DNA of 64,000 nucleotides from the sequence record MZ574431.2; one strand, given 5' to 3'. Of the stretch, positions 42,444 through 63,929 are shown in pieces; the stretch's first letter is position 1, and each line of letters starts with the position of its first letter. Position numbers and translations under genes: made by a program. The notes under the pieces are model-generated. The model was given only the letters and a program-made list of their open reading frames with translations. It did not search any database and was not told the origin of the DNA.

Positions 42444-42471
42444 TTGACAGCATAATTCTGCTATGCGACAA
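42444..42471 (+). promoter_or_regulatory. cassette promoter a
   Basis: TTGACA-GCAT-N9-ATGCGACAA. Confidence 0.8.
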
Positions 42472-42499
42472 AGGCTCATCGAAACGAGGAGCCGCCCAC

Positions 42500-42640
42500 A
42501 TGTGGGAAGTCAAGACCTTCAAGACCCGCCTCGCCAAGGAGGCCTGGATCGCCCGCAATGAGGCGCGTTACCAGATCGTCGAGATCGTGGTCGCCAACGC
42601 CTACGGCGTCGAATTCAAGCCCCTGCGACGCATCGGCTAG
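42500..42640 (+). CDS. 46-aa hypothetical protein
   Basis: RBS GAGGAG. Confidence 0.75.
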   Translation: MWEVKTFKTRLAKEAWIARNEARYQIVEIVVANAYGVEFKPLRRIG

Positions 42641-42659
42641 ACACGAAAGGAAAGCCCCC

Positions 42660-42851
42660 ATGATTCCGCCCGAGGTCCTCAACCCGCGCGACTACTGGAC
42701 CCCCATCGCCACGCGTCAGAAAGCCGAGGCCCTCGCCGAACGCTACGCGGTGGACGACTACGAGGCGCCCGGAACCTACACCGTCGAAGAAAAGGGCGCG
42801 GCCTTCGCCATCGCCTATTACGAAGACGGCGAATTCATCGCCTACGTCTAG
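42660..42851 (+). CDS. hypothetical protein
   Basis: RBS AAGGA. Confidence 0.75.
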   Translation: MIPPEVLNPRDYWTPIATRQKAEALAERYAVDDYEAPGTYTVEEKGAAFAIAYYEDGEFIAYV

Positions 42852-42856
42852 GCCAG

Positions 42857-42890
42857 ACCCGGCGCCCCCTCCCCAGGGCGCCGGGTTTTT
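42857..42890 (+). terminator. rho-independent terminator
   Basis: ACCCGGCGCCC/GGGCGCCGGGT + TTTT. Confidence 0.85.
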
Positions 42891-42904
42891 CCTGGCGCCC
42901 AGCC

Positions 42905-42978
42905 GTTAAGGTTAACCCGGCGTTAAGGTTAACGCCCCATTAGGGTTAACGCCGCGTTAGGGTTAATCGGCCATTAAC
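42905..42978. promoter_or_regulatory. tandem CtrA-type boxes, 17-bp period
   Basis: TTAA-gg-TTAA-N7-TTAA-gg-TTAA-N7-TTAG-gg-TTAA-N7-TTAG-gg-TTAA-N7-TTAA. Confidence 0.75.
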
Positions 42979-43008
42979 CCTCCAGGCGAAAATAGTGCAA
43001 GAAAGCGG

Positions 43009-43036
43009 TTGACTGCATATCAGGCCTATGCGACAA
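43009..43036 (+). promoter_or_regulatory. cassette promoter b
   Basis: TTGACT-GCAT-N9-ATGCGACAA. Confidence 0.8.
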
Positions 43037-43064
43037 GAGGGCGTCCCCAACGAGGAGGCCTCTC

Positions 43065-43700
43065 ATGGCTCTGCCGGAACACCTTTTCATCGCCGATCAC
43101 GGCGACCTCTACGATACCAGCGTCGAAGGCTGGAGCGCCAAGGCGCCCCTGCGCCGCGCCTATCGCGTCGCCCTGCCCAAAATCGAGAGCATGGGCCACG
43201 TCAAGGCCGCGCTGCGCTATGGCGACACGACTGACCTGGGCGGCTATCCGCTCTACTTCGTCACGCGCGATGGCGCGGCGCTGTCGTTCGAGAGCGCCCG
43301 CAAGATGCTCTATCAGATCGCGCTCGACTTCCAAGCCGACGCCTCGACCGGCTGGCGCATCGCCGCCGTCCAGATCAACTATGAGGACGGCGACTTGCGT
43401 TGCGATCATAGTGGCGAGCGCATCCCCTGCGCCTACAATGACCCCGAAGTCATGGCCTGGGCGAGCGGCTCCAACGTGTCGGGCTTCATGCCGGACAACG
43501 AGCCTTCCCATCATGCGACCTGGGAAGAGGCCCGCGACGCGCTCAAGCAAGACATCGAATTCGCGCGCGAGGCCTGCGAGGAGGGGAGCGAGGAGGACGG
43601 CCAATTCGCCCACGTCCTCGACGTCCTGGCCACGCTCCAAGAGGGCGCGGAATTCAACTACGGCGCCAACGGTTACCGTTGGTGGGTCGAAAAGCTCTAG
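43065..43700 (+). CDS. two-domain hypothetical phage protein
   Basis: GGYPLYFVTRDG...LRCDHSGERIPCAY; second domain GFMPDNEP. Confidence 0.85.
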   Translation: MALPEHLFIADHGDLYDTSVEGWSAKAPLRRAYRVALPKIESMGHVKAALRYGDTTDLGGYPLYFVTRDGAALSFESARKMLYQIALDFQADASTGWRIAAVQINYEDGDLRCDHSGERIPCAYNDPEVMAWASGSNVSGFMPDNEPSHHATWEEARDALKQDIEFAREACEEGSEEDGQFAHVLDVLATLQEGAEFNYGANGYRWWVEKL

Positions 43701-43714
43701 CGAAAGGAACGCCC

Positions 43715-43861
43715 ATGTTCATCCTGATTGTCGGCAATCCCGTCGATGGCTACGCCTATTATGGTCCCTTCCATGACCATGACGATGCGACCAACTATGC
43801 CGAGAACACCGGCACGGAAGGAAACCCTTGGTGGGTCGCGCCGCTTGAAGAGGCCGAGTAA
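43715..43861 (+). CDS. 48-aa hypothetical protein
   Basis: RBS AAGGA; GNPVDGYAYYGPF. Confidence 0.75.
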   Translation: MFILIVGNPVDGYAYYGPFHDHDDATNYAENTGTEGNPWWVAPLEEAE

Positions 43862-43898
43862 CCCCGCGATCTAAACCCCCTTTAAGAGGAGACCGCCC

Positions 43899-44201
43899 AT
43901 GGGCGCCGACTGTTTTGTGACCACCGCCAAGGGCAAGAACGCCAAGGAAGCGTTTCGCGACGCCGTGGACGAAGCCCAGTATAAATATGGCCATGGTGGC
44001 TATACCGGAACCATCGCCGAAAAGCACGAATTCGCCATGGACAAGGGTTTCAAGCCCGACCCCGCGAGCGAAAAGACGGTGATCGAGCAAGCCCAAGACT
44101 ACGCCTGGACCAAGGTCGAGGACGAAGACAAATATGGGCCTGCCGTGTGCCTGGACCTGGGCGAAGGTCAATTCCTGTTCTACGGCGTCGCCAAATGCTA
44201 G
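43899..44201 (+). CDS. hypothetical phage protein
   Basis: RBS GAGGAG; GHGGYTGTIAEK. Confidence 0.85.
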   Translation: MGADCFVTTAKGKNAKEAFRDAVDEAQYKYGHGGYTGTIAEKHEFAMDKGFKPDPASEKTVIEQAQDYAWTKVEDEDKYGPAVCLDLGEGQFLFYGVAKC

Positions 44202-44325
44202 GCGAGTCCAGGCCTTCGCGGCCTGGGCTTTGCCCTCCCGCCGGCGTTAACCTTAACGCGGCATTAGGGTTAACGCCGGCCGCCCAGGCTGTTAACCACC
44301 TTGCGAAAATAGTGCAAGAAAGCTG

Positions 44326-44353
44326 TTGACTGCATCAAAGCCCCATGCGACAA
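44326..44353 (+). promoter_or_regulatory. cassette promoter c
   Basis: TTGACT-GCAT-N9-ATGCGACAA. Confidence 0.8.
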
Positions 44354-44379
44354 GAGGTCATCGAAACGGGAGACACCCC

Positions 44380-44931
44380 ATGACCGACAAGACCACCGAC
44401 CTGCTCTATCCGCAAACCCTGCTGGCCCAGAACCTGCCGGGTCGCCCCGGCATGCTGCCGGCCTGGATCGTGCTGCGCGACATGGGGCCGAAATCCCATC
44501 ACCGCTACGTCACCCATATGCGGCTCGAATATCCGGCCATTGACGAGGCCGGCCCGAAATACGGCTTTGACCATGGCCATTATTTCGCCGACCTGCGCGA
44601 GGCGATCGAAGACTATAGCCAGCGCTGCGCCGATAAGGTCATGAGCGCCATGCGCCAAGCCTACGACGTACCGCGCGCGCCGGACAAGCCGCGCACCGTG
44701 ACCCTGCCGCTGGGCGTGGTCCAGGCCGCCTATGGCCTGATCGACGGCAACACCTTCGACCTCAACGCCGCCACCGAGGACAAGGACTTGGTGAACGCCA
44801 CCGAGGAGGCGCTTCGCGAGGCCCTGGGCTCCGATCGCTTTTTCCGCGATGTCGAAGCCGCCTCCAAGGCGCTCGCCGACGCCTACCGCGCCGCCAATCA
44901 ACCGCCGGCCGAGGAGACCGCCCATGGCTGA
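44380..44931 (+). CDS. hypothetical protein (MTDKTT...)
   Basis: leader ACGGGAGACACCCC-ATG. Confidence 0.85.
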   Translation: MTDKTTDLLYPQTLLAQNLPGRPGMLPAWIVLRDMGPKSHHRYVTHMRLEYPAIDEAGPKYGFDHGHYFADLREAIEDYSQRCADKVMSAMRQAYDVPRAPDKPRTVTLPLGVVQAAYGLIDGNTFDLNAATEDKDLVNATEEALREALGSDRFFRDVEAASKALADAYRAANQPPAEETAHG

Positions 44932-45439
44932 TTATGAGGCCTATGTGGTCTTGGACAAGCGCCGTCGCCATGTGGCGACGGTGACGTTCAAATTCACCGA
45001 AAGCCAAGTGACGGCCACCGTCGTCACGCCGTGGTCGGCGCCGGAGTCCCTGGCGCGCATCGCCAAGGTCAAGGGCTGGGTGATCGATCAAAACCGGCTC
45101 ATCGATCCTGCGACCGGCAAGGCCGTGGCCTATGTCTCCAAGGTCCAGGAGCAGACCGGCAAGGCCGGCGGCTACGGCTACGACAAGCGCGCCGCCTCGC
45201 TCGCCGGCCTCTATGTCGATGGCCACGAGATGGGCGACCATTCGTCCAGCCTCGGCGCCCCGAAAAAGCCCAAAGGCGCCGACCTCTACCCGGCCGACTT
45301 CACCCCGCCCAAGGGCTACCGGCTGGCCAACTACCAGAGCGCCACCGAGACCAAGGAAGCCGGCTATATGTCGTGTTTCCGCGAGCAAGGGCTGAACTAC
45401 CTGACCGCCCTGGGCTACGACGTTATCCAGGCGCTCTAA
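44924..45439 (+). CDS. hypothetical protein (MADYEA...)
   Basis: RBS GAGGAG; GKAGGYGYDK motif. Confidence 0.85.
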   Translation: MADYEAYVVLDKRRRHVATVTFKFTESQVTATVVTPWSAPESLARIAKVKGWVIDQNRLIDPATGKAVAYVSKVQEQTGKAGGYGYDKRAASLAGLYVDGHEMGDHSSSLGAPKKPKGADLYPADFTPPKGYRLANYQSATETKEAGYMSCFREQGLNYLTALGYDVIQAL

Positions 45440-45443
45440 GGCG

Positions 45444-45470
45444 AAGGCCCGCCACACCGGCGGGCTTTCT
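45444..45470 (+). terminator. rho-independent terminator
   Basis: GCCCGCC-ACACC-GGCGGGC-TTTCT. Confidence 0.75.
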
Positions 45471-45578
45471 GCTGGCCCTAGGCGTTAACCTTAACCGGGC
45501 GTTAGGGTTAACGGGGCGTAAACAAACATGGTTAACGCGGCCCATGGTCAGCCCAGGCGAAAAGGTGCAAGAAAGCTG

Positions 45579-45606
45579 TTGACAGCATTTCGACCCCATG
45601 CGACAA
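45579..45606 (+). promoter_or_regulatory. cassette promoter d
   Basis: TTGACA-GCAT-N9-ATGCGACAA. Confidence 0.8.
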
Positions 45607-45654
45607 GGGGGCTCCAAACAACGCCAACGCCCCAAGCGGGCAGGGAGACACCCC

Positions 45655-46236
45655 ATGGCCCTGGTCACCGAATCCTTCGCCGTCGACATCGACTGCACCC
45701 GCGCCCTGACCCCTGCCGAGCGGCGCGGTCTGGCCGCCGCCATCGCCCATCTGCTGGCCATCAACATCGATAAGGTCGAGCCCGAGCCGGGCGGCTACCT
45801 GACCGCCAATATCGGCCGCGTTCGCCCGGCCGGCATGACCGGCGAGGCCGGCCGCGAGGCGCGGATCAGGACCGAGGCCCTGACCAGCCTCGACCATGAC
45901 GCCCCGGTCGCCCTGACCCTGGAGTGTGGCGGCAGCGTCGATGTCATCGCCCGCTTCTACACCATGGCCGACGCCGAAACCTACCTCAACGAAAACCCGG
46001 AAATCGACCCGGTGTCGCTGAACCTGGGCTGCTACGGCATCGACGCCCCCTATGGCGTGGCCAGCGATGCCGACGCTGATAAGCTGCTCTACGACCTGGG
46101 CTATCGCCTGCACGCCACGGCCGGCGGCTCCTGGACCTTCACCGACCCGAAGGGCTATCTCTGGGACGGCGGCGCCAAGCGTGAGGCCGTGGTCATGATC
46201 GCCCTGGCGCAAGCCGCCCAAATCGAGGAGGCGTAA
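45655..46236 (+). CDS. hypothetical protein (MALVTES...)
   Basis: leader GGGAGACACCCC-ATG. Confidence 0.85.
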   Translation: MALVTESFAVDIDCTRALTPAERRGLAAAIAHLLAINIDKVEPEPGGYLTANIGRVRPAGMTGEAGREARIRTEALTSLDHDAPVALTLECGGSVDVIARFYTMADAETYLNENPEIDPVSLNLGCYGIDAPYGVASDADADKLLYDLGYRLHATAGGSWTFTDPKGYLWDGGAKREAVVMIALAQAAQIEEA

Positions 46237-46241
46237 ACGCC

Positions 46242-46667
46242 ATGACCCGCTATTCGATCATGGTCGAGGTCCAGACCCTCGCCGACAGCGAAACCCAGGC
46301 CCGCAAGGACGTTGAATTCGCCATCATTGAGGGCCGGTTCCCCGAGCACATGAATTGGATGGTTCGCCAGAGCGCCCCTTGCGCCGGCGAGACCGTCCAG
46401 GCCGATGACACCCCCACCCGCTGGGCGACCTTTGTCGGTCAAGCCTGGGTCCAGGGCCACAGCATGGAGGTGGACGACGCGCGCGTGCGCTACGGGATCA
46501 CCGACGCCGAATTCAACGCCAATGGCGGCGATGAGCCCGCCGACTTCGACGCCCTGGCCCAAGCCGCCCGCGCCCCGCAATGGGTCAAGGACTGGTCAGG
46601 CCCGTTCGACGTCTATATTTCCGACATCGAGGACGGGGAAGACCCCGAGGAAGTGCGCCAGCTATGA
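46242..46667 (+). CDS. acidic hypothetical protein
   Basis: RBS GGAGG; WSGPF motif. Confidence 0.85.
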   Translation: MTRYSIMVEVQTLADSETQARKDVEFAIIEGRFPEHMNWMVRQSAPCAGETVQADDTPTRWATFVGQAWVQGHSMEVDDARVRYGITDAEFNANGGDEPADFDALAQAARAPQWVKDWSGPFDVYISDIEDGEDPEEVRQL

Positions 46668-47215
46668 AACGCCGCCACAGCCTTTATTTGCTGGTGATCA
46701 ACACCGGCCCCCTGGTGATCCTCCAGGCGCCGGCCGATTTCCTGCGCTGGGACATCCACCGCGCCGCCATCCTGCGCATGATGCGCCGTGACCATGGCGT
46801 CAAGGCCAAGGACGTTCACGCCATCGAAGGCCTCGCCGGCTCGCCCTACGGCGCCGACGATGACCGCGAGGCCCTGGGCAAGCTCAAGGAAACCTTCGCG
46901 GGCCTGCGCCACGGCTTCGCCGCCTTCCACCTCTACACCTGGGACGGCAAGGACTATCAGCCCTTGCGCGAGCCCCTGACGCGCCCGCAAGGCCTTGTTC
47001 GCCTCCTAGGCCCCTATCCGCCGCCGAGCGGCGTCTATGGGCCGCACGCGCGCAAGACCGCCTCCCACGTCTATCAGGTCTTCAACGCCGATGGCGTCAA
47101 GCTGGTGGGCGGCTCGTTCGGCCCCGATCCTGACGCGGCCCTGGCCTATGCCCGCGCCCAAGCCGCCGCCAAGGGCTACCCTGACCCGGCGGTCGAGATC
47201 GTCACCCCGAATTAA
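46664..47215 (+). CDS. hypothetical protein (MKRRHS...)
   Basis: ATGA overlap. Confidence 0.75.
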   Translation: MKRRHSLYLLVINTGPLVILQAPADFLRWDIHRAAILRMMRRDHGVKAKDVHAIEGLAGSPYGADDDREALGKLKETFAGLRHGFAAFHLYTWDGKDYQPLREPLTRPQGLVRLLGPYPPPSGVYGPHARKTASHVYQVFNADGVKLVGGSFGPDPDAALAYARAQAAAKGYPDPAVEIVTPN

Positions 47216-47229
47216 ATGCAAGAAAACTG

Positions 47230-47257
47230 TTGACAGCCTTTCGGGGCCATGCGAGAA
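47230..47257 (+). promoter_or_regulatory. cassette promoter e (left arm GCCT)
   Basis: TTGACA-GCCT-N9-ATGCGAGAA. Confidence 0.7.
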
Positions 47258-47330
47258 CAAGGCTCAAGACGAGACAAGAGACAGCCAAGAGGAGGACATC
47301 ATGAAGTAGCGACAATCTGGAGCACACCTC

Positions 47331-47789
47331 ATGAATGTATTCGTCCGCGACGATCTTTTTCAAACCGATCTCGACGAGTGTGGTGACCCGCTTCTGGGTC
47401 GCGTCTTCTACGTCGTTGTCGAGGATCAGAACGGCGCCCGCATCGCCCACGATCGTTGTTTCTACGATCACCGGCGCGTCACCGATGAGGATGGCTTCGC
47501 CTTCTGGCAAGCCCTCTCTTACGAAGACGTCGCCGCCGAGGAAGCCAAGGCGAAAGCCCTGGCCGCCAAGATCGAGAGCCATCTGGCGCGGGGCGGCGCC
47601 CTGGACCCCGAGCACTGGCGAGACATCGACCCGTGCTATGGCTCCAAGGCCTATGCCGATCTCGACCGGTTCGGCTACTTCCTGGCCAAGGAACGGGCCG
47701 CCGACCGCGATCGAGGCGAGAACGTCCCTGACAGCCCTTGGGACGGCATCGCCGCCATGGTCGATGGCCCCAACTGGTTCGACCGCTGA
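47331..47789 (+). CDS. hypothetical phage protein
   Basis: RBS GGAG; preceded by in-frame ATG-AAG-TAG minigene. Confidence 0.85.
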   Translation: MNVFVRDDLFQTDLDECGDPLLGRVFYVVVEDQNGARIAHDRCFYDHRRVTDEDGFAFWQALSYEDVAAEEAKAKALAAKIESHLARGGALDPEHWRDIDPCYGSKAYADLDRFGYFLAKERAADRDRGENVPDSPWDGIAAMVDGPNWFDR

Positions 47790-47793
47790 TCTT

Positions 47794-47821
47794 AAGGCCT
47801 CGCCACCCGGCGGGGCCTTTT
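47794..47821 (+). terminator. rho-independent terminator
   Basis: AAGGCCTCGCC/GGCGGGGCCTT + TT. Confidence 0.75.
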
Positions 47822-47906
47822 GACCACCGCCTGGGCGTTAACCTTAACCGCCCGTTAGGGTTAACCCCGTCGCGCCCGGCGTTAACCCTGTGGCGCAAGA
47901 AAGCTG

Positions 47907-47934
47907 TTGACAGCATATCAGCCCCATGCGACAA
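47907..47934 (+). promoter_or_regulatory. cassette promoter f
   Basis: TTGACA-GCAT-N9-ATGCGACAA. Confidence 0.8.
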
Positions 47935-47962
47935 GAGCCCATCACAACGAAGGAGGTCGCCC

Positions 47963-48640
47963 ATGGGCGCCGGCATTTCAAAGACCGCACTGAACGCCCG
48001 CGTTCGGCGCCGCCTGCAAAACTTCGCCCACGCCAACGGTGGGACCTACGCCAAATATCAGGCCCAAGGCGTCAAGGACGGCCTGCCCTGGACCAAGGGC
48101 GTCAACGTACTTCGCGCCTCCAATGGCGAGACCTTTGGCCTTGACTGCATCGTCATCGGTCAGGGCGAGGCCGCCCGCCCCTACGGCTTTTCCGACCTCG
48201 ATAGCGCGATCCTGGCCTATCGCCTGGACGAGGCCGAAACCGGCGCGGCGATCTTCGCGGGCCAGCGCGGCGATTACAAGCGCTTGATCGGCCGGCGTAG
48301 CCCGTTCATCCAGACCTGGGGCTTTGACTATTGCCTCGCCCTGGAGTTGGACGACGGCGGGTTTACGCTCTTTCGCCCGAACGGGACCATGCTTCCCTTC
48401 CGGGGCGAGGCCGCCGACAGTTGGGCGCGTGAGCTTTGGGTTCTGTTGCCCAAGGTCTACCGCCGCCACGACGAGCGCAAGCCGCTCTATCGCAGCGAGG
48501 CGATCGCCCAAGCCCAGGCCCTGGACCTGTGGGCCAGCCAGTTCGCCGACGAGGATTGGACCACCGCCGGGGATGACTGGCGCGGCAAGCCCGACCACTA
48601 CAAAGGCCCCCGCAACCTGCCCCACGGCGACCCGCTCTAG
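47963..48640 (+). CDS. hypothetical protein (MGAGISK...)
   Basis: RBS AAGGAGG. Confidence 0.85.
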   Translation: MGAGISKTALNARVRRRLQNFAHANGGTYAKYQAQGVKDGLPWTKGVNVLRASNGETFGLDCIVIGQGEAARPYGFSDLDSAILAYRLDEAETGAAIFAGQRGDYKRLIGRRSPFIQTWGFDYCLALELDDGGFTLFRPNGTMLPFRGEAADSWARELWVLLPKVYRRHDERKPLYRSEAIAQAQALDLWASQFADEDWTTAGDDWRGKPDHYKGPRNLPHGDPL

Positions 48641-48740
48641 CCAGAGGATCACCCAGGCCCCGCGCCTGGGTTCGATCCTTGCCGCGTCCGTTAACCCTAA
48701 CACGGCGTTAAGGTTGACAAAAATAAATGCAAGAAAGCTG

Positions 48741-48768
48741 TTGACAGCATCGAAGCCACATGCGACAA
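48741..48768 (+). promoter_or_regulatory. cassette promoter g
   Basis: TTGACA-GCAT-N9-ATGCGACAA; leader nearly identical to c. Confidence 0.8.
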
Positions 48769-48794
48769 GAGGTCATCGAAACGGGAGACACCCC

Positions 48795-49295
48795 ATGAAC
48801 GACCAATATCCGCCCCTGACCGATGGCCAGCAAGCGGCCCTGGTCGCCTTCGCCGACCAGCATGGCGGCCTGGGCGAGGCCTGGAAGGAAGCCCTCGGCG
48901 ACGCCTGGAGGACGTGCAGCGAGCCCGAGGCCCTCAAGGCCGACCTGCGAACCATCCGCAACACCTATGGCCCCTCCTGGCTCTATGATGAATATGCCTG
49001 GGGCTGGCGCCCGACCCTGCCGGAGTGGGAGCGCGCCGGGCGCTGGACCGACACCCCGCCGCAGCCGACGCCGGGCAAGGCCCGCTGGAGCGCGTCGTTC
49101 GACCCGCCGGCCATCGGCGAGCGCGTCCGGGTGACCACCAACGGCCTGGGCTGGGCGAGGGTCACCGGCTACTTCGTCGAAGGCGACTGGCTGGGCGTGA
49201 TCGTCAAGCTTGAAGCCCCGGCCGACTGGTATGTCAAGCAGAACGGCGGCAACGTCCCCGGCCACAGCTTCGGAACCGAAATCGCCCTGGATTAA
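48795..49295 (+). CDS. hypothetical protein (MNDQYP...)
   Basis: leader ACGGGAGACACCCC-ATG; LRTIRNTYGPSWL. Confidence 0.85.
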   Translation: MNDQYPPLTDGQQAALVAFADQHGGLGEAWKEALGDAWRTCSEPEALKADLRTIRNTYGPSWLYDEYAWGWRPTLPEWERAGRWTDTPPQPTPGKARWSASFDPPAIGERVRVTTNGLGWARVTGYFVEGDWLGVIVKLEAPADWYVKQNGGNVPGHSFGTEIALD

Positions 49296-57230: not shown

Positions 57231-57233
57231 AGA

Positions 57234-57263
57234 AAAAGGCCCTGGCGAGCGCCGGGGCCTTTC
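57234..57263. terminator. bidirectional terminator
   Basis: AAAAAGGCCCTGGC-GAGC-GCCGGGGCCTTT. Confidence 0.75.
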
Positions 57264-57301
57264 GATCGTAAGCTGTGATTAACCCTAACGCCGCCTTAAG
57301 G

Positions 57302-57538: not shown

Positions 57539-57656
57539 TGGGATTTCCTGTAGGTCAAGCGGAGGCTTGGGCCATCGAGGAAAGTACCACGCCGCCGGCC
57601 CATGTCAAGAACGGCGCCACGGGTCAAGAATCGCGACTCAAGGCGCAAGAAAACTG

Positions 57657-57685
57657 TTGACACGCATCGCGCCGCCATGCGACAA
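57657..57685 (+). promoter_or_regulatory. cassette promoter o
   Basis: TTGACA-CGCAT-N9-ATGCGACAA. Confidence 0.8.
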
Positions 57686-57712
57686 AGGCTCAGCACAACA
57701 GGGACACCCGCC

Positions 57713-58156
57713 ATGAACCTCGAAGACTGGTTTTACCCTTCCTCCGACATCTCCAACTCTGACCAGACCATCGACTCCCGCGACGTCATCAAGCGGGTCG
57801 ATGAACTGCAAGCCGCTTTCGATGACGCCGAGATCGATCCTGATCAGGTGCTCGCCGACGACGAGCTAGACCTGGGCAAGGACGCCGAGGAAATCCGCGA
57901 CGCCGCCCAAGAGCTTAAGGCGCTCAAGGACTTCGCCGAGGAGGGCGAGAACTACGCCGCCGACTGGACGAGCGGCGAAACCCTGATCCGAGAAAGCTAT
58001 TTCGTCGAGTATGCCGAGCAGCTTTGCAAGGACATCGGCGACCTGCCCGACAACATCCCCGGCTATCTGGCCATTGACTGGGAAAAGACCGCCAACAACA
58101 TCAAGGCCGATTACTCCGAAATCGAGTTTGACGGCGTCACCTATCTGGTCCGCTAA
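57713..58156 (+). CDS. acidic ArdA-like antirestriction / DNA-mimic candidate
   Basis: about 40/147 D+E; C-terminal YLAIDWEKTANNIKADYSEIEFDGVTY resembles ArdA C-domain. Confidence 0.55.
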   Translation: MNLEDWFYPSSDISNSDQTIDSRDVIKRVDELQAAFDDAEIDPDQVLADDELDLGKDAEEIRDAAQELKALKDFAEEGENYAADWTSGETLIRESYFVEYAEQLCKDIGDLPDNIPGYLAIDWEKTANNIKADYSEIEFDGVTYLVR

Positions 58157-58163
58157 GGCGAGC

Positions 58164-58191
58164 GGCCGGCGTCCCCTGGGCGCCGGCCTTT
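58164..58191 (+). terminator. rho-independent terminator
   Basis: GGCCGGCG/CGCCGGCC + TTT. Confidence 0.65.
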
Positions 58192-58259
58192 CCCTGGCCA
58201 CGATCGGTTAACCTTAACGCCTGGGGCCAGACGGTTAAGGTTAACGCAAGGCCCTGGCG

Positions 58260-58356
58260 AGGGAACGTCAAGGCCGCGAGCTAGGATTACTCGCGAATGG
58301 CTTAGCCGGCGTCCAGCCGGCGGCGCCTTCGACCACCGCGAGGCGGCCTTGACCCT
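58260..58356 (-). ncRNA. candidate ~95-nt structured ncRNA (four-way junction)
   Basis: perfect 11-bp closing stem 58267-77/58343-53, three inner hairpins, minus-strand TTGACA at 58383-88. Confidence 0.4.
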
Positions 58357-58414
58357 GACAGTCTCGCCCAAGCGCCGCGCCATGTCAACCGATTTCTTAT
58401 GTGCAAGAAACCTG

Positions 58415-58442
58415 TTGACAGCATGTCCGCCCCATGCGAGAA
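58415..58442 (+). promoter_or_regulatory. cassette promoter p
   Basis: TTGACA-GCAT-N9-ATGCGAGAA. Confidence 0.8.
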
Positions 58443-58470
58443 AGCCTCATCATTCACTGGGAACGACCCC

Positions 58471-59130
58471 ATGCCCCGCACCGTCACCAAACAGGTCTAC
58501 AAGTTCACCGAACTGAGCGACAAGGCCAAAGCCAAGGCCGTCGAGTGGTATCGCGAGCTTGAGATGCAAGAAACCGGCTGGTGGGATTACGTCTATGAAG
58601 AGGCCGACCGCATCGCCGACGCCTTCGGGATCACGCTCAATCGCAGCGAAGCCGGCAAGCCCATGTCCGGCCCCGACATCCTGTTCAGCGGCTTCTACAG
58701 CCAAGGCGACGGCGCCTGTTTCCAAGGCCGCTACGCCAGCCCCCAAATCCCGGCCGTGGAGGGCTTCGCCGCCCTCGGGATCGAAGACGACAACCTCAAG
58801 GCCCTCGCCGTGCGCCTGGACGCTCTGAGCGCCAAGACCGGCGGACGCCTGACGACCGTGGTTCGCCACAGCGGTTACTATTATCACGAGTATTGCACCG
58901 CCTTCGAAACCGAACTGACCGACCCTGAAGACGGTTCGGACTTCGACCCCTACGCCTATGACGTGGAGGATGAAAAGGAACTGGTCGACATCCTGCGCCG
59001 GTTCATGAAGTGGATTTATCGTCAGCTTGAAGAGGCCGATGAGGCCCGCCTGTCTGACGAGACGATCACCGAAGCCCTCGCCGACTCCGACTACGAGTTT
59101 GAGGCCAGCGGGGCGCCGACCAGAGACTAG
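58471..59130 (+). CDS. acidic protein of a plasmid/ICE leading-region family (often labelled antitoxin-like)
   Basis: YKFTELSDKAKAKA, FSGFYSQGDGACF, IYRQLEE...SDETITEAL. Confidence 0.65.
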   Translation: MPRTVTKQVYKFTELSDKAKAKAVEWYRELEMQETGWWDYVYEEADRIADAFGITLNRSEAGKPMSGPDILFSGFYSQGDGACFQGRYASPQIPAVEGFAALGIEDDNLKALAVRLDALSAKTGGRLTTVVRHSGYYYHEYCTAFETELTDPEDGSDFDPYAYDVEDEKELVDILRRFMKWIYRQLEEADEARLSDETITEALADSDYEFEASGAPTRD

Positions 59131-59265
59131 GCCAAGACGGCGCCCGGCCCTCCCGCCGGGCGCCGATCGTGGTTAACGCCGTGTCGGGTTTTTGTAACCT
59201 TAACCCTCTGTTAAGGTTAATGAAAAAGGCCCTTTCCGTTAACCACGAATAATGCGAGAAAGCTG

Positions 59266-59294
59266 TTGACACGCATCGCAGCCCCATGCGACAA
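59266..59294 (+). promoter_or_regulatory. cassette promoter q
   Basis: TTGACA-CGCAT-N9-ATGCGACAA. Confidence 0.8.
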
Positions 59295-59320
59295 AGGGCC
59301 ATCGCAACGGGAGACACCCC

Positions 59321-59608
59321 ATGACGAAACAAGCCCCAAAGCGCCGCAAGCGCTACCCGCCCAAGAGCGACGCGGCCAAGGCCCGCGCCGCCGCCAAGAG
59401 CAAGGCGTTTTTCGCCCGCCACGCCCTCAAGGCCACCGAGGCGGCTATCGCCGCCATGGCGGCGGGCGATCAAAAGGCCGTCCAACGCCACGCCAAGGAC
59501 GCCCGGCGCCTCAATCGCTGGATGTGCCACAAGCGCGACATCGCCGCCGCCTTCAAGGCCGTGTTCGACATCCGCGCCGCCGCTCAAGCCCTGCGAACCG
59601 CCGCATGA
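59321..59608 (+). CDS. basic Ala-rich hypothetical protein
   Basis: leader ACGGGAGACACCCC-ATG. Confidence 0.8.
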   Translation: MTKQAPKRRKRYPPKSDAAKARAAAKSKAFFARHALKATEAAIAAMAAGDQKAVQRHAKDARRLNRWMCHKRDIAAAFKAVFDIRAAAQALRTAA

Positions 59609-59820
59609 TCCGCCGCCCCGCCCTCATGACCTGCATCGCCGGCGCCGCCCTCATCCTGTCGGGCGTGGCCGTTTCGGCCGCCAGCGCCCCGGAAAAGCGG
59701 GTTCTCGTCGGTCAATACTGCGACGGCGACCCCGTGCGCCTCTATGGCCTGGAGGACGGCGAGGAAGCCGCCCAAGCCTGCGCCATCGTCGAGGTCCACG
59801 CCCTGCCGAAAGGACTCTGA
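59605..59820 (+). CDS. small exported protein
   Basis: ATGA overlap; signal peptide ending AASA; Cys pair. Confidence 0.7.
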   Translation: MIRRPALMTCIAGAALILSGVAVSAASAPEKRVLVGQYCDGDPVRLYGLEDGEEAAQACAIVEVHALPKGL

Positions 59821-59822
59821 CC

Positions 59823-60281
59823 ATGCCCGGACATCCCGCCTTCGATCTTGATGAGCGCGAAGCCGCCGCCGTCATTGCCGGCCTGCGCCTGCTGCAACGC
59901 ATCGGCGTGCCGGTCGAGCTAGAAGACGTCGCCACCAACGGCGGCGCCTTCGACGTGCTCGATGACACCGCCATCGACGCGCTCTGCGAGCGCATCAATC
60001 TGGACCTGACCACCACGCCGCCGCCCGTGCTGATCGAGAGCCGCGAGGAGCCGGTTCGCGTCGAGGACCTCAAGGGCGGCATGATGTGCGACCTTGAGGG
60101 CGACATGTTCGCCGACAACGCCGGCCGTTACCCCGAATTCGAGTTCGCCTATGCCGTCGTTGTCGAGGTGCAGGTCAACCCGAAGGGCGAGCCGCCTGGA
60201 ACCGTGATCGTCGAGTTCGACAAGATCACCGTGGCCTTTCCCATCGGCCACACCCTGCCGACCATCAAGGACCCGCAATAA
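59823..60281 (+). CDS. hypothetical phage protein
   Basis: EAAAVIAGLRLLQ motif; RBS AAGGA. Confidence 0.8.
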   Translation: MPGHPAFDLDEREAAAVIAGLRLLQRIGVPVELEDVATNGGAFDVLDDTAIDALCERINLDLTTTPPPVLIESREEPVRVEDLKGGMMCDLEGDMFADNAGRYPEFEFAYAVVVEVQVNPKGEPPGTVIVEFDKITVAFPIGHTLPTIKDPQ

Positions 60282-60296
60282 AACGCAAGAAAGCTG

Positions 60297-60324
60297 TTGA
60301 CAGCATAATCAGCCTATGCGAGAA
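60297..60324 (+). promoter_or_regulatory. cassette promoter r
   Basis: TTGACA-GCAT-N9-ATGCGAGAA. Confidence 0.8.
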
Positions 60325-60362
60325 AGGATCGTCAAAGGCGATCCCGCCTCGTGGAGACACCC

Positions 60363-60707
60363 ATGAAACTGGTCAAGTCCAACATCATCGACAACCACCG
60401 CATGACGGCGCTGCGCAACTGCATCACCGTCGCCATCGAGCGCTTTCAAGAGCACGTCGATGAGATGAAGCCGGCCGCCGAGCAATACGAGGCCGCCGAC
60501 GACGCGGGCAAGAAGGCCCTGGAAGCGGCCACGCCCATGGTTCACCCTCGCGTCTATCGCCAGCTTTCCGACCAGTTCGAGGGCCAGATCGAAGAAGCCC
60601 GCAAGCTGCTGGACTGGCTGGACGGCGACGCCTACCAAGACGCCTCGGGCGAGTTCCCCGAAGGCACCGATTTCGTCGTCGTCGCCGGCCTCGTCCGCGA
60701 CTACTGA
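60363..60707 (+). CDS. hypothetical protein (MKLVKS...)
   Basis: leader GGAGACACCC-ATG. Confidence 0.85.
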   Translation: MKLVKSNIIDNHRMTALRNCITVAIERFQEHVDEMKPAAEQYEAADDAGKKALEAATPMVHPRVYRQLSDQFEGQIEEARKLLDWLDGDAYQDASGEFPEGTDFVVVAGLVRDY

Positions 60708-60714
60708 CCAAGCC

Positions 60715-60742
60715 AAGGCCCGCCTCACCGGCGGGCCTTTTC
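60715..60742 (+). terminator. rho-independent terminator
   Basis: AAGGCCCGCC-TCACC-GGCGGGCCTT-TT. Confidence 0.8.
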
Positions 60743-60827
60743 CTCGCCAGCCCACGTTAACCTTAACGCCGCGTTAGGGTTAACGGCGGGCCGGTTTTCG
60801 TTAACCAAAGAAAATGCAAGAAACCTG

Positions 60828-60856
60828 TTGACTGACATCTTGGTTCTATGCGACAA
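60828..60856 (+). promoter_or_regulatory. cassette promoter s (left arm ACAT)
   Basis: TTGACT-G-ACAT-N9-ATGCGACAA. Confidence 0.75.
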
Positions 60857-60883
60857 AGGCCCATCACCAACGGGAACGCTCCC

Positions 60884-61282
60884 ATGACCCAAGACCTGAC
60901 CACCGAAGAACGCAACGCCAAGCTCGCCGAAATGGCCGATCACTGGCGCGAGCAACTCAAGGTCGCCCAGGCTCGCCTTGACATGACCGTGCTGGTCGGC
61001 AAGGGCTTTATCTGCGCCCTGGACCGCGATCAATCGATGGCGATCCGCGCCGATGGTCCCGACCGCTATCGCCTGTGGCCGGTGTCGGCGCACCTGACCC
61101 ACCTCCTCCACTTCACCAAGCTTGACGCCATGCGGGTCGCCGCCCATTGGAACGCGCGCCTCCCCGACGACAAGCAAGACCTGCGAGTGAGCGCCATCCA
61201 CTACCGCGACGCGCTCAAAACCTTCGTGGAAGTGGCCAAGTCGCAAATCGCCTGGATCGAAGGCGGCTGCAAGGCGGCCTGA
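60884..61282 (+). CDS. hypothetical protein (MTQDLT...)
   Basis: leader AACGGGAACGCTCCC-ATG. Confidence 0.8.
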   Translation: MTQDLTTEERNAKLAEMADHWREQLKVAQARLDMTVLVGKGFICALDRDQSMAIRADGPDRYRLWPVSAHLTHLLHFTKLDAMRVAAHWNARLPDDKQDLRVSAIHYRDALKTFVEVAKSQIAWIEGGCKAA

Positions 61283-61441
61283 TCTTGACGCCCTCCGGCT
61301 CCGGCCGGAGGGTTAATTTTTGGCCAGCCTGCATTAACCTTAACGCGCAACCGTTCTCAGGTTAACCTTAACGTGAAAACGGTTGCAGGTTAACCTTAAC
61401 CCCGCCCGCCCAGGCCTTAACCAAACCTCGCGAGAAAACTG

Positions 61442-61470
61442 TTGACTCGCATCGAGGCCCCATGCGACAA
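61442..61470 (+). promoter_or_regulatory. cassette promoter t
   Basis: TTGACT-CGCAT-N9-ATGCGACAA. Confidence 0.8.
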
Positions 61471-61498
61471 GGTGACATCGACAACCGGAGGCCCTTCC

Positions 61499-62155
61499 AT
61501 GGCCAGCCCTGAAGACATCGCCACCGTCCAAGCCGCCGCCGTCTCTTTCGACCTGGAAGCGTGGGAAGCGGAAAAAGGCGAGTATGCCGAGGCTCATTGG
61601 CGTTATCTGAACTACGCCTTTGAAATCGAGACCTATTCGCACATGTTCAGCCAAGCCGAACGCGACGCCGCGCGCCGTCTCATCGAAGAATATGAGACCG
61701 CCCAGACCGACCATCAAGGCACCTATGTTGACGAGAGCGCCGCGCTCATCGCCAGCGCCGACGCCTTCACCCGCCAATATATCGCCAGCGCCCTTTGGAC
61801 CGGCGTCGAGTTGCCCTATGGCGACGACCGCGCCGACAGCGGCGGCGCCTATGACCTCGAAGAGGATTCGATCATCCCCGCCACGCTGCGCGACATGATC
61901 GAAGATTGCGCCACCTTCCAACGCGACAACGCCGACACCCTGGCCAAGGCCTATGAGTCGGACGTGTATATTCAAGGCGAGCGCTACAACGCCAGCAACG
62001 CGGGGCACGATTTTTGGCTGACCCGCAACGGCCATGGCGCGGGCTTTTGGGATCGCGGCCTAGAAGAGGTCGGCGAGGCCCTGACCAAGGCCTGCAAGGC
62101 GTTCGGGGAATACTATCTCGCCATGAGCGACAACGGCGAAATCTCCAAGATGTGA
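61499..62155 (+). CDS. acidic hypothetical phage protein
   Basis: NAGHDFWLTRNGHGAGFWDRG motif; RBS GGAGG. Confidence 0.85.
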   Translation: MASPEDIATVQAAAVSFDLEAWEAEKGEYAEAHWRYLNYAFEIETYSHMFSQAERDAARRLIEEYETAQTDHQGTYVDESAALIASADAFTRQYIASALWTGVELPYGDDRADSGGAYDLEEDSIIPATLRDMIEDCATFQRDNADTLAKAYESDVYIQGERYNASNAGHDFWLTRNGHGAGFWDRGLEEVGEALTKACKAFGEYYLAMSDNGEISKM

Positions 62156-62160
62156 CGATC

Positions 62161-62189
62161 AAGGCCCGCGCTTGACGCGGGCCTTTTTC
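62161..62189 (+). terminator. rho-independent terminator
   Basis: AAGGCCCGCG-CTTGA-CGCGGGCCTT-TTT. Confidence 0.85.
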
Positions 62190-62256
62190 TGCCCCGTCCG
62201 GGTTAACCTTAACGCCGGGCGACTTTCCGTTAACCGAAGAAAATGCAAGAAAGCTG

Positions 62257-62285
62257 TTGACTCGCATCTTCGTTATATGCGAACT
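62257..62285 (+). promoter_or_regulatory. cassette promoter u
   Basis: TTGACT-CGCAT-N9-ATGCGA. Confidence 0.75.
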
Positions 62286-62315
62286 TGACGACATCGGAAA
62301 TCAAGGAACGCCGAC

Positions 62316-62690
62316 ATGGCTAAGACCGAAACCGTCGACCTCGCCCTGGTCATGCTCGATGAGAGCAAGGCCGCCAAGGGCGCCCCGCGCGCCTTCACGT
62401 TCGGCGAAGTCCGCGAGGCCTTCACCGACGCGCACGCCTTGACGTTGCTTCAAGCGCGCTTGCGCCAGATCAACGAAAACGAGTGCAACGGCTATCGCGA
62501 CGAAACCGCCGAACGCCTGGACGCGCGCCGCGAGGAGCGCGCTAAGGCCGCCGTCGCCGAGATCGCCAAGCGCTACGGCCTGACCTTCCATTTCAACGGC
62601 GATCCGCGCGGGTCGGCGCTGAAGCTGAAGACGCCTCACACCGGCCGTTATAACGGCTTTGGCGGCCGTGAGGATGGTTGGGCCGTCTAG
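62316..62690 (+). CDS. hypothetical phage protein
   Basis: FNGDPRGSALKL motif; RBS AAGGA. Confidence 0.85.
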   Translation: MAKTETVDLALVMLDESKAAKGAPRAFTFGEVREAFTDAHALTLLQARLRQINENECNGYRDETAERLDARREERAKAAVAEIAKRYGLTFHFNGDPRGSALKLKTPHTGRYNGFGGREDGWAV

Positions 62691-62758
62691 GCCCAACTTG
62701 ACGCCGCTTCACCCCCTGTAACGCGTCCCCTTCCACCCCTAGGCCTTGGAGACACACA

Positions 62759-62968
62759 ATGGCCCGCACTGCCGATCACACCACCGCCGACCGTACCCGC
62801 GCCCCTCGCGACCTCGCGCCGTGGGAACTCGACGCCGAACGCCGCCGCGCGCGCAAGGCTTCCAAGTCCTGGCGCGCCGAACGCAAGGGCGTGCGCTCGA
62901 TGGGCGACTATGCCCAGGGCGACGACATGCGCACCCTCGCCGATGGGGCCGATTTCTACCCGAACTAG
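62759..62968 (+). CDS. small basic hypothetical protein
   Basis: RBS GGAG. Confidence 0.65.
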   Translation: MARTADHTTADRTRAPRDLAPWELDAERRRARKASKSWRAERKGVRSMGDYAQGDDMRTLADGADFYPN

Positions 62969-63016
62969 GGCGCGCCCTGGCCAGCGAAAAAAAGTGCCGT
63001 CAACGCAAGAAAGGCG

Positions 63017-63044
63017 TTGACGGCATAATCGCCATATGCGACAA
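63017..63044 (+). promoter_or_regulatory. cassette promoter v
   Basis: TTGACG-GCAT-N9-ATGCGACAA. Confidence 0.8.
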
Positions 63045-63070
63045 AGGCTCATCGGCAACGGAGACACGCC

Positions 63071-63265
63071 ATGACCTTCCACCACAACCTGATGAGCAAG
63101 CTGGACGCGGCCCAAATGGCGGGCGAAATGACCTACGCCCAACACGCCGACATGCGCGCCACGCTGCGGGCCTCCAACATGCGCGGTCAAGTCTTCACCT
63201 CGATGGATGAACTGCGCAAGGCCTGCAAGGGCGCCGGTCGCGACTTCCAAGGCCGGTTCGCCTAA
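63071..63265 (+). CDS. 64-aa hypothetical protein (MTFHHNLMSKLDAA...)
   Basis: leader ACGGAGACACGCC-ATG; duplicated at 63957. Confidence 0.8.
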   Translation: MTFHHNLMSKLDAAQMAGEMTYAQHADMRATLRASNMRGQVFTSMDELRKACKGAGRDFQGRFA

Positions 63266-63283
63266 GACCCCCTCCCCTGAGAG

Positions 63284-63310
63284 GCCCGCCCTAGAGGCGG
63301 GCTTTTTCTT
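63284..63310 (+). terminator. rho-independent terminator
   Basis: GCCCGCC-CTAGA-GGCGGGC-TTTTTCTT. Confidence 0.85.
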
Positions 63311-63443
63311 GGCCGTTAGCCTACCGTTAAGGTTAACCCCCAGGCCCTCTGGGGTTAACCCTAACGCCGCGTTAAGGTTAACCCCGGCGGCCCAGGCCTT
63401 AACCATGACAAGGAAAAAAGATCGCTTTCCTGCGAGAAAGCTG

Positions 63444-63471
63444 TTGACCGCATAAAGGCGATATGCGACAA
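63444..63471 (+). promoter_or_regulatory. cassette promoter w
   Basis: TTGACC-GCAT-N9-ATGCGACAA. Confidence 0.8.
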
Positions 63472-63495
63472 AGGGTCATCAACGGAGCAAGTCCA

Positions 63496-63666
63496 ATGTC
63501 CTTCCGCCTCGCCCTTACCGAAGACGCCCGCTTCACCGCCGCCCGTGGCGCGGTCCGCACCGTCCGCGAGCAAGCCCGCCCGGCGCCGCACAAGGACATT
63601 GACGGCAAGGCCCTGCTGGCGCCCGCCTCGGCGCTGGACCGCATCCGCGCCGTTCTCGGGAACTGA
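63496..63666 (+). CDS. 56-aa hypothetical protein (MSFRLAL...)
   Basis: RBS GGAG. Confidence 0.7.
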   Translation: MSFRLALTEDARFTAARGAVRTVREQARPAPHKDIDGKALLAPASALDRIRAVLGN

Positions 63667-63669
63667 GTC

Positions 63670-63861
63670 ATGAAGGTCATCGCGCACTATGCCAACGGCC
63701 TGCAACGGGTCATCCCCTGCGAGACCTCGCAAGAGGCTGTGGCCGCGATCAAGGCGGCTCTGACCTATGATCGCGCCGCCAAGTTCACGCTTGACAAGCG
63801 CCTTGCCTCGGCGATCCCGACCCGCGCCGCCTCCGAACGGGTTTGGCTGTTGAGCGCGTGA
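63670..63861 (+). CDS. 63-aa hypothetical protein
   Basis: coupled to the previous gene. Confidence 0.7.
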   Translation: MKVIAHYANGLQRVIPCETSQEAVAAIKAALTYDRAAKFTLDKRLASAIPTRAASERVWLLSA

Positions 63862-63900
63862 GGGCGATCGAAAAAAGATCGCCTCACCGCAAAAAACCTG

Positions 63901-63929
63901 TTGACTCGCATAAGGCCCCTATGCGATAA
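63901..63929 (+). promoter_or_regulatory. cassette promoter x
   Basis: TTGACT-CGCAT-N9-ATGCGATAA. Confidence 0.8.

Follow-up and report, generated by a model that had tools for sequence, protein, structure and literature searches.

Twenty-four promoters in the long terminal repeat of Caulobacter phage J4 carry an inverted repeat (dyad), GCAT-N9-ATGC, or a close variant of it, in the spacer between the -35 and -10 regions, and these promoters most likely constitute a separately controlled class, which we call class A. The dyad is tentatively interpreted, at slightly less than an even chance, as a putative operator for a dimeric, probably phage-encoded helix-turn-helix (HTH) protein that controls the terminal-repeat genes as a regulon. 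The 64,000-nt stretch analysed (the window) is identical by megablast (100%) to J4 (MZ574431.2; 312,338 bp), a phiCbK-related jumbo phage of the genus Bertelyvirus. It corresponds to record positions 248001-312000, ending 338 bp short of the genome end, and by the record annotation the right terminal repeat occupies window positions 39615..64000 on the + strand (record 287615-312338). The direct terminal repeat is 24.7 kb long, its right copy houses all of the dyad promoters, and every gene in it is annotated as hypothetical. Transcription in Caulobacter jumbo phages is essentially unstudied and nearly all terminal-repeat genes are without assigned function; the literature searched yielded no description of these promoters.

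Architecture of the class A promoters

The window has 22 exact GCAT-N9-ATGC matches, every one of them on the + strand and between 42450 and 63924. Dinucleotide shuffles of the window contained a mean of 1.23 and at most 5 such matches, and none of 100 shuffles reached 22. Anchoring the search on ATGCGA identified 24 promoters in the J4 terminal repeat, all with a TTGAC -35. TTGACN abuts GCAT in 14 of them, giving a 17-bp spacer, and the remaining 10 have TTGACNN, one base more, and an 18-bp spacer. With the class A -10 hexamer taken as GA(C/G)AAA, ATGC lies at -16 to -13, and the 17-nt dyad spans -29 to -13, centred in the -35/-10 spacer and coextensive with a spacer of 17 bp. The left arm is G in 23, C in 24, A in 23 and T in 24 of the 24 promoters, the exceptions being TTGACA-GCCT at 47230 and TTGACTG-ACAT at 60828. 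ATGCGA is present in 24/24 and the sequence after ATGC reads GAnAA in 22/24 (22/24 for each of the two A's), the exceptions being the promoters at 50491 and 62257. In nine promoters (52909, 55678, 56587, 57657, 59266, 61442, 62257, 63444 and 63901) the symmetry extends to CGCAT...ATGCG.

A preliminary description of this DNA had reported an exact dyad directly after TTGACN(N) in 22 of 24 cassette promoters, the GCCT and ACAT exceptions, nine extended dyads and an invariant ATGCGA; every count was reproduced. Its observation that the -10 reads GAxAA rather than TAnAW also holds (22/24), and an Escherichia coli-type promoter scan called none of the class A promoters because their hexamer lacks T at the last position. 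The description of the 9-bp centre as fixed in length and variable in sequence is right for the length; variability is confined to the first four to five bases. Positions 1-5 of N9 are nearly random, whereas the 3' half (positions 6-9) is skewed to (G)CCC(C/T).

Upstream of the dyad, class A promoters have a conserved A-rich, upstream element (UP)-like sequence, GCAAGAAAgCTG, before the TTGACA -35. Downstream they have a conserved GG(C)TCATC and then a leader containing a Shine-Dalgarno sequence; TCATC, 5-6 nt past the hexamer, would be compatible with a transcription start there. The dyad had further been described as layered on top of CtrA-like sites. TTAAC/GTTAA half-site repeats do occur upstream of 15/24 cassette promoters, but a full CtrA box (TTAA-N7-TTAA) lies within 130 bp upstream of only 3/24 and forms the -35 of none, so this layer is weaker than had been implied.

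Conservation across the genus

J4 was compared with CcrSC and CcrBL9, phages of the same genus that are ~80% identical to it; all three were isolated on CB15, and BL47 contributes no independent lineage to the comparison. The terminal repeats of CcrSC and CcrBL9 contain 25 and 26 exact dyads, as compared to ~0.5 expected, and 23 and 24 promoters built in this way, yielding a set of 71 promoters (24 + 23 + 24). TTGAC is found in 71/71. The arms read G69 C70 A69 T71 and A71 T71 G71 C71, the right arm being followed by G70 A71.

Promoters were paired by reciprocal best match of the downstream coding sequence, giving 18 + 18 pairs between J4 and CcrSC/CcrBL9 and 21 between CcrSC and CcrBL9. Among the 36 J4 comparisons the four positions of GCAT differ in 3, 1, 0 and 0 and ATGCGA in 0, while the nine positions of N9 differ in 15, 19, 27, 25, 16, 20, 14, 10 and 23. 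Within one genome, N9 positions 1-5 show 0.61-0.66 differences per site between promoters, and 61 distinct N9 sequences are found among the 71. Judged from these comparisons, the left arm is under purifying selection within the genus. The preliminary description had made the operator depend on conservation of the left GCAT in relatives, and at the level of this genus it is conserved.

N9 is never N8 or N10 in orthologous families. The 17/18-bp spacer class switched in 6 of 20 families, always by ±1 nt at the TTGACN/GCAT junction; GCAT is thus in register with ATGC and the -10 region, not with the -35. The extra base of the 18-bp spacer is C in 9/10 J4, 14/14 CcrSC and 13/13 CcrBL9 promoters (36/37), and this inserted C lengthens the symmetry to CGCAT/ATGCG.

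Two positions beside or within the right module differ by lineage. Position -17 is C in 15 and T in 9 J4 promoters (e.g. window 48759) vs T in 41/47 promoters of CcrSC and CcrBL9, and the variable base (N) of the -10 is C in 17/24 J4 promoters (GACAAA, e.g. window 48766) vs G in 37/47 (GAGAAA). Such shifts would be expected if the promoters co-evolved with a protein encoded by the phage, or if short tracts evolved in concert. An orphan CGCAT-N9-ATGCGA, common to CcrSC and CcrBL9 (CcrSC 2376-2398 in locus L002; CcrBL9 1598-1620 in locus L003), has neither a TTGAC -35 nor an A-rich -10 and sits in the non-coding start of the repeat; it represents a single event.

Class B promoters as an internal control

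A second group of promoters, class B, comprises 27 members genome-wide in J4 (record 152-275 kb; loci L246, L247, L248 and L128), oriented with the strand of the genes they precede. These promoters have the same (t)GCAAGAAAgCTG-TTGACA module as class A, an unconstrained 17-18-bp spacer, the norm in this phage, and a host-like cTAnnn -10; neither GCAT nor TG is present in any of the 27. The two classes share the upstream half and differ in the downstream half, which in class A is (C)GCAT-N9-ATGCGA(C/G)AA. Since class B has the same UP/-35 module and no GCAT, GCAT is not needed for J4 promoters to retain that module.

Five promoters in the left arm of the window, all on the + strand, had been singled out earlier as sharing the upstream element, and they indeed combine a (T/C)AAGAAAgCTG-TTGACA module with a -10 of the TA type and lack the dyad. 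They are located at 1338..1366 (AAGAAAGCTG-TTGACA, 17-bp spacer, -10 TATCAC), 10717..10746 (-10 TAGATG), 11618..11647 (where GCTAGATC matches the host GCtANAWC exactly), 22932..22961 (-10 region CTTTATGG) and 26447..26475 (-10 TAGAAG). Class B promoters head long non-structural gene blocks on both strands, and none lies in the structural-gene region.

Distribution beyond the terminal repeat

The 263 kb of unique J4 sequence contain 3 GCAT-N9-ATGC matches (~5 expected) and 2 ATGCGAnAA matches (~3 expected), the latter without a -35. The left arm and the right module occur only together and only within the terminal repeat. The regulon-like promoter set proposed in the preliminary description is supported to this extent: the dyad is real, strongly selected and confined to the terminal repeat. 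Two of the three unique-region dyad matches (record ~53.8 kb) were discarded as part of an unrelated TTTATGC tandem repeat. This region (locus L244, 29790-29930) has ~27-bp tandem repeats GGTTTATGCTCTTTAGGACATAAATCT, is intergenic and lies past the capsid genes; it may be a late regulatory region. The extra dyads at CcrSC 9537 and CcrBL9 8861 are not operators; each is a GCATCC-N5-GGATGC stem-loop beside a promoter.

No dyad was found in phiCbK, Rogue or Colossus, which infect the same host. Their terminal-repeat promoters have a TTAAC-N6/7-TTAA CtrA box in the place of the -35 and a cTAGGgT -10, an arrangement that fits the CtrA dependence shown for the phiCbK gp005 and gp018 terminal-repeat promoters (Mascolo et al. 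2022, PMC9437464). In IMG/VR a 20-base pattern retrieved CcrSC and CcrBL9 entries only, a 15-base pattern was swamped by single chance matches, and a scan for the UP/-35 module was flooded and uninformative. The composite promoter matched once among 185,579 bacterial species genomes, in a rumen bacterium, which we take as chance, and a single JGI metagenome match on a bacterial infC/rpmI contig was read in the same way. Across these searches, the dyad promoter element is specific to this genus.

A lookalike in Brevundimonas phage Marchewka reads TTGACA-GCAA-N9-ATGCGAGAA. It was rejected as a chance or isolated occurrence, a lone site with no family in the surrounding 50 kb. The site, GCTG-TTGACA-GCAA-N9-ATGCGAGAAGGG (locus L249, 1505-1540; record 139959), lies in a divergent intergenic region and is one left-arm mismatch from the class A core.

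The dyad as a putative operator

Several features point to an operator. The arms are kept (69-71/71) around near-random N9 positions 1-5 (61 distinct N9 sequences), the arm-to-arm distance is fixed and the C insertion extends the dyad. Class B shares the UP/-35 module without GCAT, the left arm and right module co-occur only in the terminal repeat, and CcrSC and CcrBL9 have the orphan site in common. The lineage-specific -17 and -10 bases, arising despite a single host, would fit co-evolution with a phage-encoded reader, and candidate proteins exist (gp194 and gp211).

Because two inverted 4-5-mers stand at a fixed distance, a homodimer is the most economical reader, and the 17-19-bp dyad would be the site of a sequence-specific homodimer spanning the entire spacer. 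The underlying promoter would already be strong, with its UP-like element, perfect -35, optimal spacer and extended -10; for this reason the dimer would most likely be a repressor, occluding or locking RNA polymerase. Such a protein would let the phage switch every gene of the two terminal-repeat copies at once, e.g. for early-gene shut-off, so that ~48 promoters per genome would be silenced together while class B, untouched, continues. The preliminary description spoke of first-injected genes; early injection of the terminal repeat may be suggested by analogy with T5 and SPO1. In SPO1 and T5, arrays of small genes behind their own strong promoters lie in the terminal redundancy and are jointly switched off later. 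J4 likewise has a small-gene array inside a long terminal repeat, whose timing and shut-off may be similar by that analogy; the SPO1 and T5 shut-off is not known to use a spacer dyad.

A reader is more likely to be encoded by the phage than by the host, with gp194, gp211 and gp226c as candidates, none of them assignable to the site. The protein gp194 (locus L246, 19106-19828) matches HTH_3 and, weakly and in its C-terminal domain, Peptidase_S24; the 434 and P22 c2 repressors are the solved structures most similar to its HTH. It is 65-68% identical to its counterparts in CcrSC and CcrBL9 and ~28% identical to proteins of Colossus, CcrPW and Brevundimonas phages. This CI-like protein is encoded by a virulent jumbo phage. 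A weak HTH_31 match is found in gp211 (122 amino acids), which is restricted to Bertelyvirus apart from 28-29% matches in two Brevundimonas phages, and gp226c, an HTH protein of the Xre type, occurs in the whole subfamily. The matches obtained for the terminal-repeat proteins themselves were a weak one to ArdA (anti-restriction; Pfam E = 9.5e-5), an HslV-like peptidase (gp491) and a ligase-like family; the ArdA-like and HslV-like matches are consistent with an early role in host takeover.

A number of observations weigh against the operator. The right arm is fully explicable by RNA polymerase, as described below, leaving just the 4-5 bp of the left arm. Conservation is asymmetric, with ATGCGAnAA and the GCCC(C/T) bias of N9 on the right and no mirror of either on the left. 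The lineage-specific shifts near the right arm are not mirrored on the left and so argue against a perfectly symmetric reader. From centre to centre the half-sites are separated by 13-14 bp, a distance that does not correspond to an integral helical turn. Some N9 variants turn up at promoters that are not orthologous (CCAAGCCCT four times, for example); conversion of whole promoters must therefore occur, and the 71 copies cannot be counted as independent. Conversion still cannot hold two 4-mers invariant with five near-random bases in between. The symmetry was noticed post hoc, and the chance of a mirror match to a conserved 4-mer is ~1-2%. J4 lacks an orphan dyad outside its promoters. On the protein side, no binder could be assigned to the dyad among the J4 candidates, Pfam and PHROGs profiles detected no DNA-binding domain in the 48 terminal-repeat proteins, and gp194 autoregulation through the dyad was rejected because its upstream region has GTCATGAC-type palindromes instead.

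The right arm as an RNA polymerase element

The right arm of the dyad coincides with known polymerase elements. ATGC has the form of an extended -10, with A-16, T-15 and G-14 in 71/71 and T-17 in 50/71 promoters (TRTGn in CcrSC and CcrBL9), and its GC coincides with the GC of the -10 consensus GCtANAWC. In this sense the dyad is less hidden than the preliminary description had it: since the right arm is a polymerase element, a separate factor is needed to explain just the left arm and the fixed N9, and the operator reading depends on these two features and on the symmetry. This double role also accounts for the right arm being more conserved than the left.

The consensus of the Caulobacter sigma-73 factor (RpoD) is TTGaCgS / GCtANAWC (Malakooti et al. 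1995, as quoted in PMC8144410). Class A promoters resemble it in their TTGAC -35, in the G/C at the seventh base of the -35 (except J4 49452, with A, J4 60828, with G followed by ACAT, and CcrBL9 4375), in the GC before the hexamer and in A at two -10 positions; their spacing lies towards the top of the range reported for it. Aligned to GCtANAWC, GC-G-A-(C/G)-A-A-A matches G, C, A, A and W and mismatches t (G) and the final C (A/G). Class A thus differs in having G at -12 (G70 across the 71 promoters), where the host consensus and class B prefer T, and A for the last C, in the invariant A, T and G before GC, and in the conserved GCAT block; class B of J4 fits the host consensus better than does class A. 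Extended -10 promoters usually tolerate a poor -35. Class A is like them in its TG and in a weak hexamer, as is typical of TG-reliant promoters, but it retains a perfect -35 and a UP-like element and has the mirrored GCAT 9 bp upstream.

These similarities raise the possibility, which we consider a real but doubtful one, that the host sigma-73 holoenzyme alone reads the entire block as a composite promoter, GCAT being a spacer element positioned from the -10 and the symmetry coincidental. The extended -10 character of ATGC, with T-17 in 41/47 CcrSC and CcrBL9 promoters, the asymmetric conservation with no mirroring inside N9, and the lack of a recognisable DNA binder among the terminal-repeat proteins all agree with a polymerase-only reading. 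GC before the -10 belongs to the Caulobacter consensus and is functionally important; the gyrB promoter became twice as active when GC was restored in front of its -10 (PMC1175088). Polymerase alone fits less well with the 27 class B promoters, which have the same UP/-35 module and spacer length and neither GCAT nor TG, with the invariant G-12 in place of the favoured T, and with the lineage-specific -17 and -10 N bases, which one host polymerase would not predict. GCAT occupies -29 to -26, where the holoenzyme is not known to make a base-specific contact.

Other possible readers of the element

The departure of class A from a standard -10 could also reflect positive control. A phage-encoded factor, possibly delivered with the virion, would read GCAT + ATGCGAnAA and be needed to open GAsAAA promoters that lack T-12 and T-7, the -35/UP half being left to region 4 of the host sigma factor and the alpha subunit. 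The failure of the E. coli-type scan on the non-canonical hexamers, the invariance of ATGCGA with its G-12, a right module that never occurs without the left arm, lineage-specific base preferences beside that module, and the near-absence of the full composite from bacterial genomes (one chance match in 185,579) are all as such a factor would predict. We nevertheless consider it unlikely: at many known promoters a -35, a UP-like element and TG are already enough for strong activity, the J4 annotation, on which this point rests, lists neither a sigma-like nor a polymerase gene, and the terminal-repeat genes are expected to be the earliest, from the T5/SPO1 analogy and the weak ArdA-like match, so that the factor would itself need to be injected. 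A related and similarly improbable proposal is that class A is read through a phage-encoded, possibly virion-delivered dimer on (C)GCAT-N9-ATGCG that shares spacer bases with polymerase and its extended -10 contact, the two promoter classes differing only downstream; it would be a device for promoter-class specificity. If so, the factor would have co-evolved with ~48 sites per genome, explaining the lineage-specific bases beside the right arm.

Still less probable is that a dimeric Caulobacter regulator binds the dyad and, alongside the CtrA-type sites, couples repeat expression to the state of the host. There is precedent in the same host: as reported through PMC1175088, the RRF motif lies between the -35 and -10 of sigma-73 replication-gene promoters, is bound by an unidentified cellular factor and has a negative effect (Keiler and Shapiro 2001). 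Spacer-located RRF motifs silence promoters in swarmer cells, and the RRF-binding activity would be one possible host factor; the likeness of this conserved sigma-73 spacer motif to the J4 dyad is one of position. CtrA, a host protein, also controls phiCbK terminal-repeat promoters. The dyad, however, is confined to one genus and missing in phiCbK, Rogue and Colossus, which infect this same host, and its flanking bases have shifted lineage by lineage.

N4-type promoters form a stable 5-7-bp stem with a 3-nt loop and are used by a virion RNA polymerase. Although the J4 element is an inverted repeat and conversion between cassette promoters occurs, it is very improbable that the dyad acts as a nucleic-acid structure (an N4-type hairpin or cruciform promoter, or an RNA stem) or is a functionless by-product of concerted evolution, given arms of merely 4-5 bp around a 9-nt loop, the lack of an annotated polymerase gene, a position upstream of the likely transcription start and so outside the cassette's own messenger RNA, and the inability of conversion to fix two 4-mers around 5 near-random bp. 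Mirrored N9 positions are complementary no more often than their marginal frequencies predict; there is therefore no hairpin signal or covariation, the symmetry is confined to 4-5 bp per arm, and a hairpin or RNA reading was rejected.

Individual promoters and neighbouring features

All 24 class A cores are on the + strand of the window. The first, at 42444..42472, has TTGACA, GCAT-N9-ATGC, GACAAA and a 17-bp spacer and lacks the A-rich GCAAGAAA module. It is followed by cores with 17-bp spacers at 43009..43037 (TTGACT), 44326..44354 and 45579..45607. The core at 47230..47258 has the GCCT left arm; its CcrBL9 orthologue is also degenerate, and its CcrSC orthologue has GCAT. Further 17-bp cores lie at 47907..47935, 48741..48769 (the nearest to consensus), 51905..51933, 55210..55238, 58415..58443 and 60297..60325. 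The core at 49452..49481 (TTGACAA + GCAT) is the sole 18-bp case with an extra base other than C, and that at 50491..50519 (TTGACG) has the deviant -10 region GATGTC. Cores with an 18-bp spacer and a 5+5 dyad (CGCAT/ATGCG) occur at 52909..52938 (TTGACAC + GCAT), 55678..55707, 56587..56616, 57657..57686 and 59266..59295. At 60828..60857 the left arm is ACAT and the spacer 18 bp, and at 61442..61471 (TTGACTC + GCAT, 18-bp spacer) the GACTC forms a GANTC site over the -35. The core at 62257..62286 (TTGACTC) has the deviant -10 region GAACTT, and that at 63017..63045 (TTGACG) a 17-bp spacer. At 63444..63472 (TTGACC + GCAT, 17-bp spacer) the 5+5 dyad uses the last -35 base, and the final core, 63901..63930 (TTGACTC, 18-bp spacer), is a tandem duplicate of that of cassette 22 (63017..63045).

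The distal promoters at 61442, 62257 and 63901, and also the distal ones of CcrSC and CcrBL9, read TTGACTCG, which places GANTC, the target of the host CcrM methylase, over the -35 and the first base of the dyad. The cassette with the GCCT promoter has a two-codon open reading frame (ATG AAG TAG, 47285-47293) in a long leader upstream of the real start. This mini-frame is found in all three phages, and its cassette is the only one with a degenerate left arm in both J4 (GCCT) and CcrBL9.

The last J4 cassette, a promoter and three small genes (~885 bp; 63017-63930), is tandemly duplicated. The same cassette is present in six copies in BL47 (locus L252, 25.7-30.0 kb), whose terminal repeat is 30.2 kb. 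Given the J4 duplicate and the six BL47 copies, the distal end of the repeat is expanding via cassette duplication.

Ahead of the first cassette is a 1.3-kb non-coding stretch containing, at 41560-41830, approximately seven iteron-like direct repeats, TTGACG-N5-6-(G/T)CATTTC, spaced 22-34 bp apart, with similar arrays in Colossus (locus L004, 1374-1527) and CcrSC. The array may serve as an origin or as a signal for packaging or for stopping injection. A relation to the dyad was rejected; some of the repeats contain CGCAT, but the consensus is CATTTC. A dense cluster of ~12 TTA(A/G)GGTTAAC / GTTAACC repeats, resembling CtrA half-sites, follows at 41840-42120, with an A/T-rich stretch continuing to 42230. 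The repeats upstream of 15/24 cassette promoters are of the same type and are not full TTAA-N7-TTAA boxes.

Relation to known systems and significance

The preliminary description compared the dyad to the operators of MerR-type regulators and of phage repressors. MerR-type promoters have an overlong 19-20-bp spacer that needs untwisting. The J4 dyad, like MerR operators, is centred in and spans the spacer, with a half-site separation similar to that of 7-7-7 CueR-type sites; the overlong spacer is absent, however, the 17-18 bp of class A being the same as in class B, which removes the rationale for a MerR-type mechanism. No MerR family match was found by profiles in the 48 terminal-repeat proteins, and none is annotated elsewhere in J4.

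The 434 operator reads ACAA-N6-TTGT, the lambda operators are 17 bp long and the LexA site is CTGT-N8-ACAG. The J4 element resembles these CI, Cro and LexA operators in being a dyad of 17 bp whose 4-5-bp outer arms are conserved while the centre varies, in its fixed spacing and in its overlap with the core promoter, in a phage that encodes a 434/P22-c2-like HTH and S24-like protein as candidate reader. J4 differs in having one site at each of 24 promoters (48 per genome), where those operators are tandem, cooperative sites confined to one or two promoters, in the 13-14 bp between half-site centres, in the use of one arm as a polymerase element as well, and in a binder that is only putative.

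The terminal repeats of phiCbK-like phages and Colossus (PMC9437464), also Dolichocephalovirinae, similarly comprise many near-identical promoters and small genes without assigned function within a long terminal repeat, and CtrA-type half-sites are found near the Bertelyvirus promoters as well. The promoters themselves differ: those of phiCbK and Colossus use a CtrA box as the -35 with a cTAGGgT -10, whereas those of Bertelyvirus have TTGACA and the spacer dyad, with full CtrA boxes at only 3/24.

The dyad is a sharply defined cis-element and provides an experimental handle on block switching of the terminal-repeat genes; it also bears on how such switching relates to the CtrA-based 'lytic deferment' proposed for phiCbK relatives. 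Class A and class B together form a natural experiment on the contribution of the spacer and the extended -10 in alphaproteobacterial sigma-70 promoters, and class A might serve in Caulobacter genetics as a compact panel of promoters that are orthogonal and co-regulated. Recognition of the element by polymerase alone would amount to a new spacer contact, and recognition by a dimer would reveal a new phage regulator.

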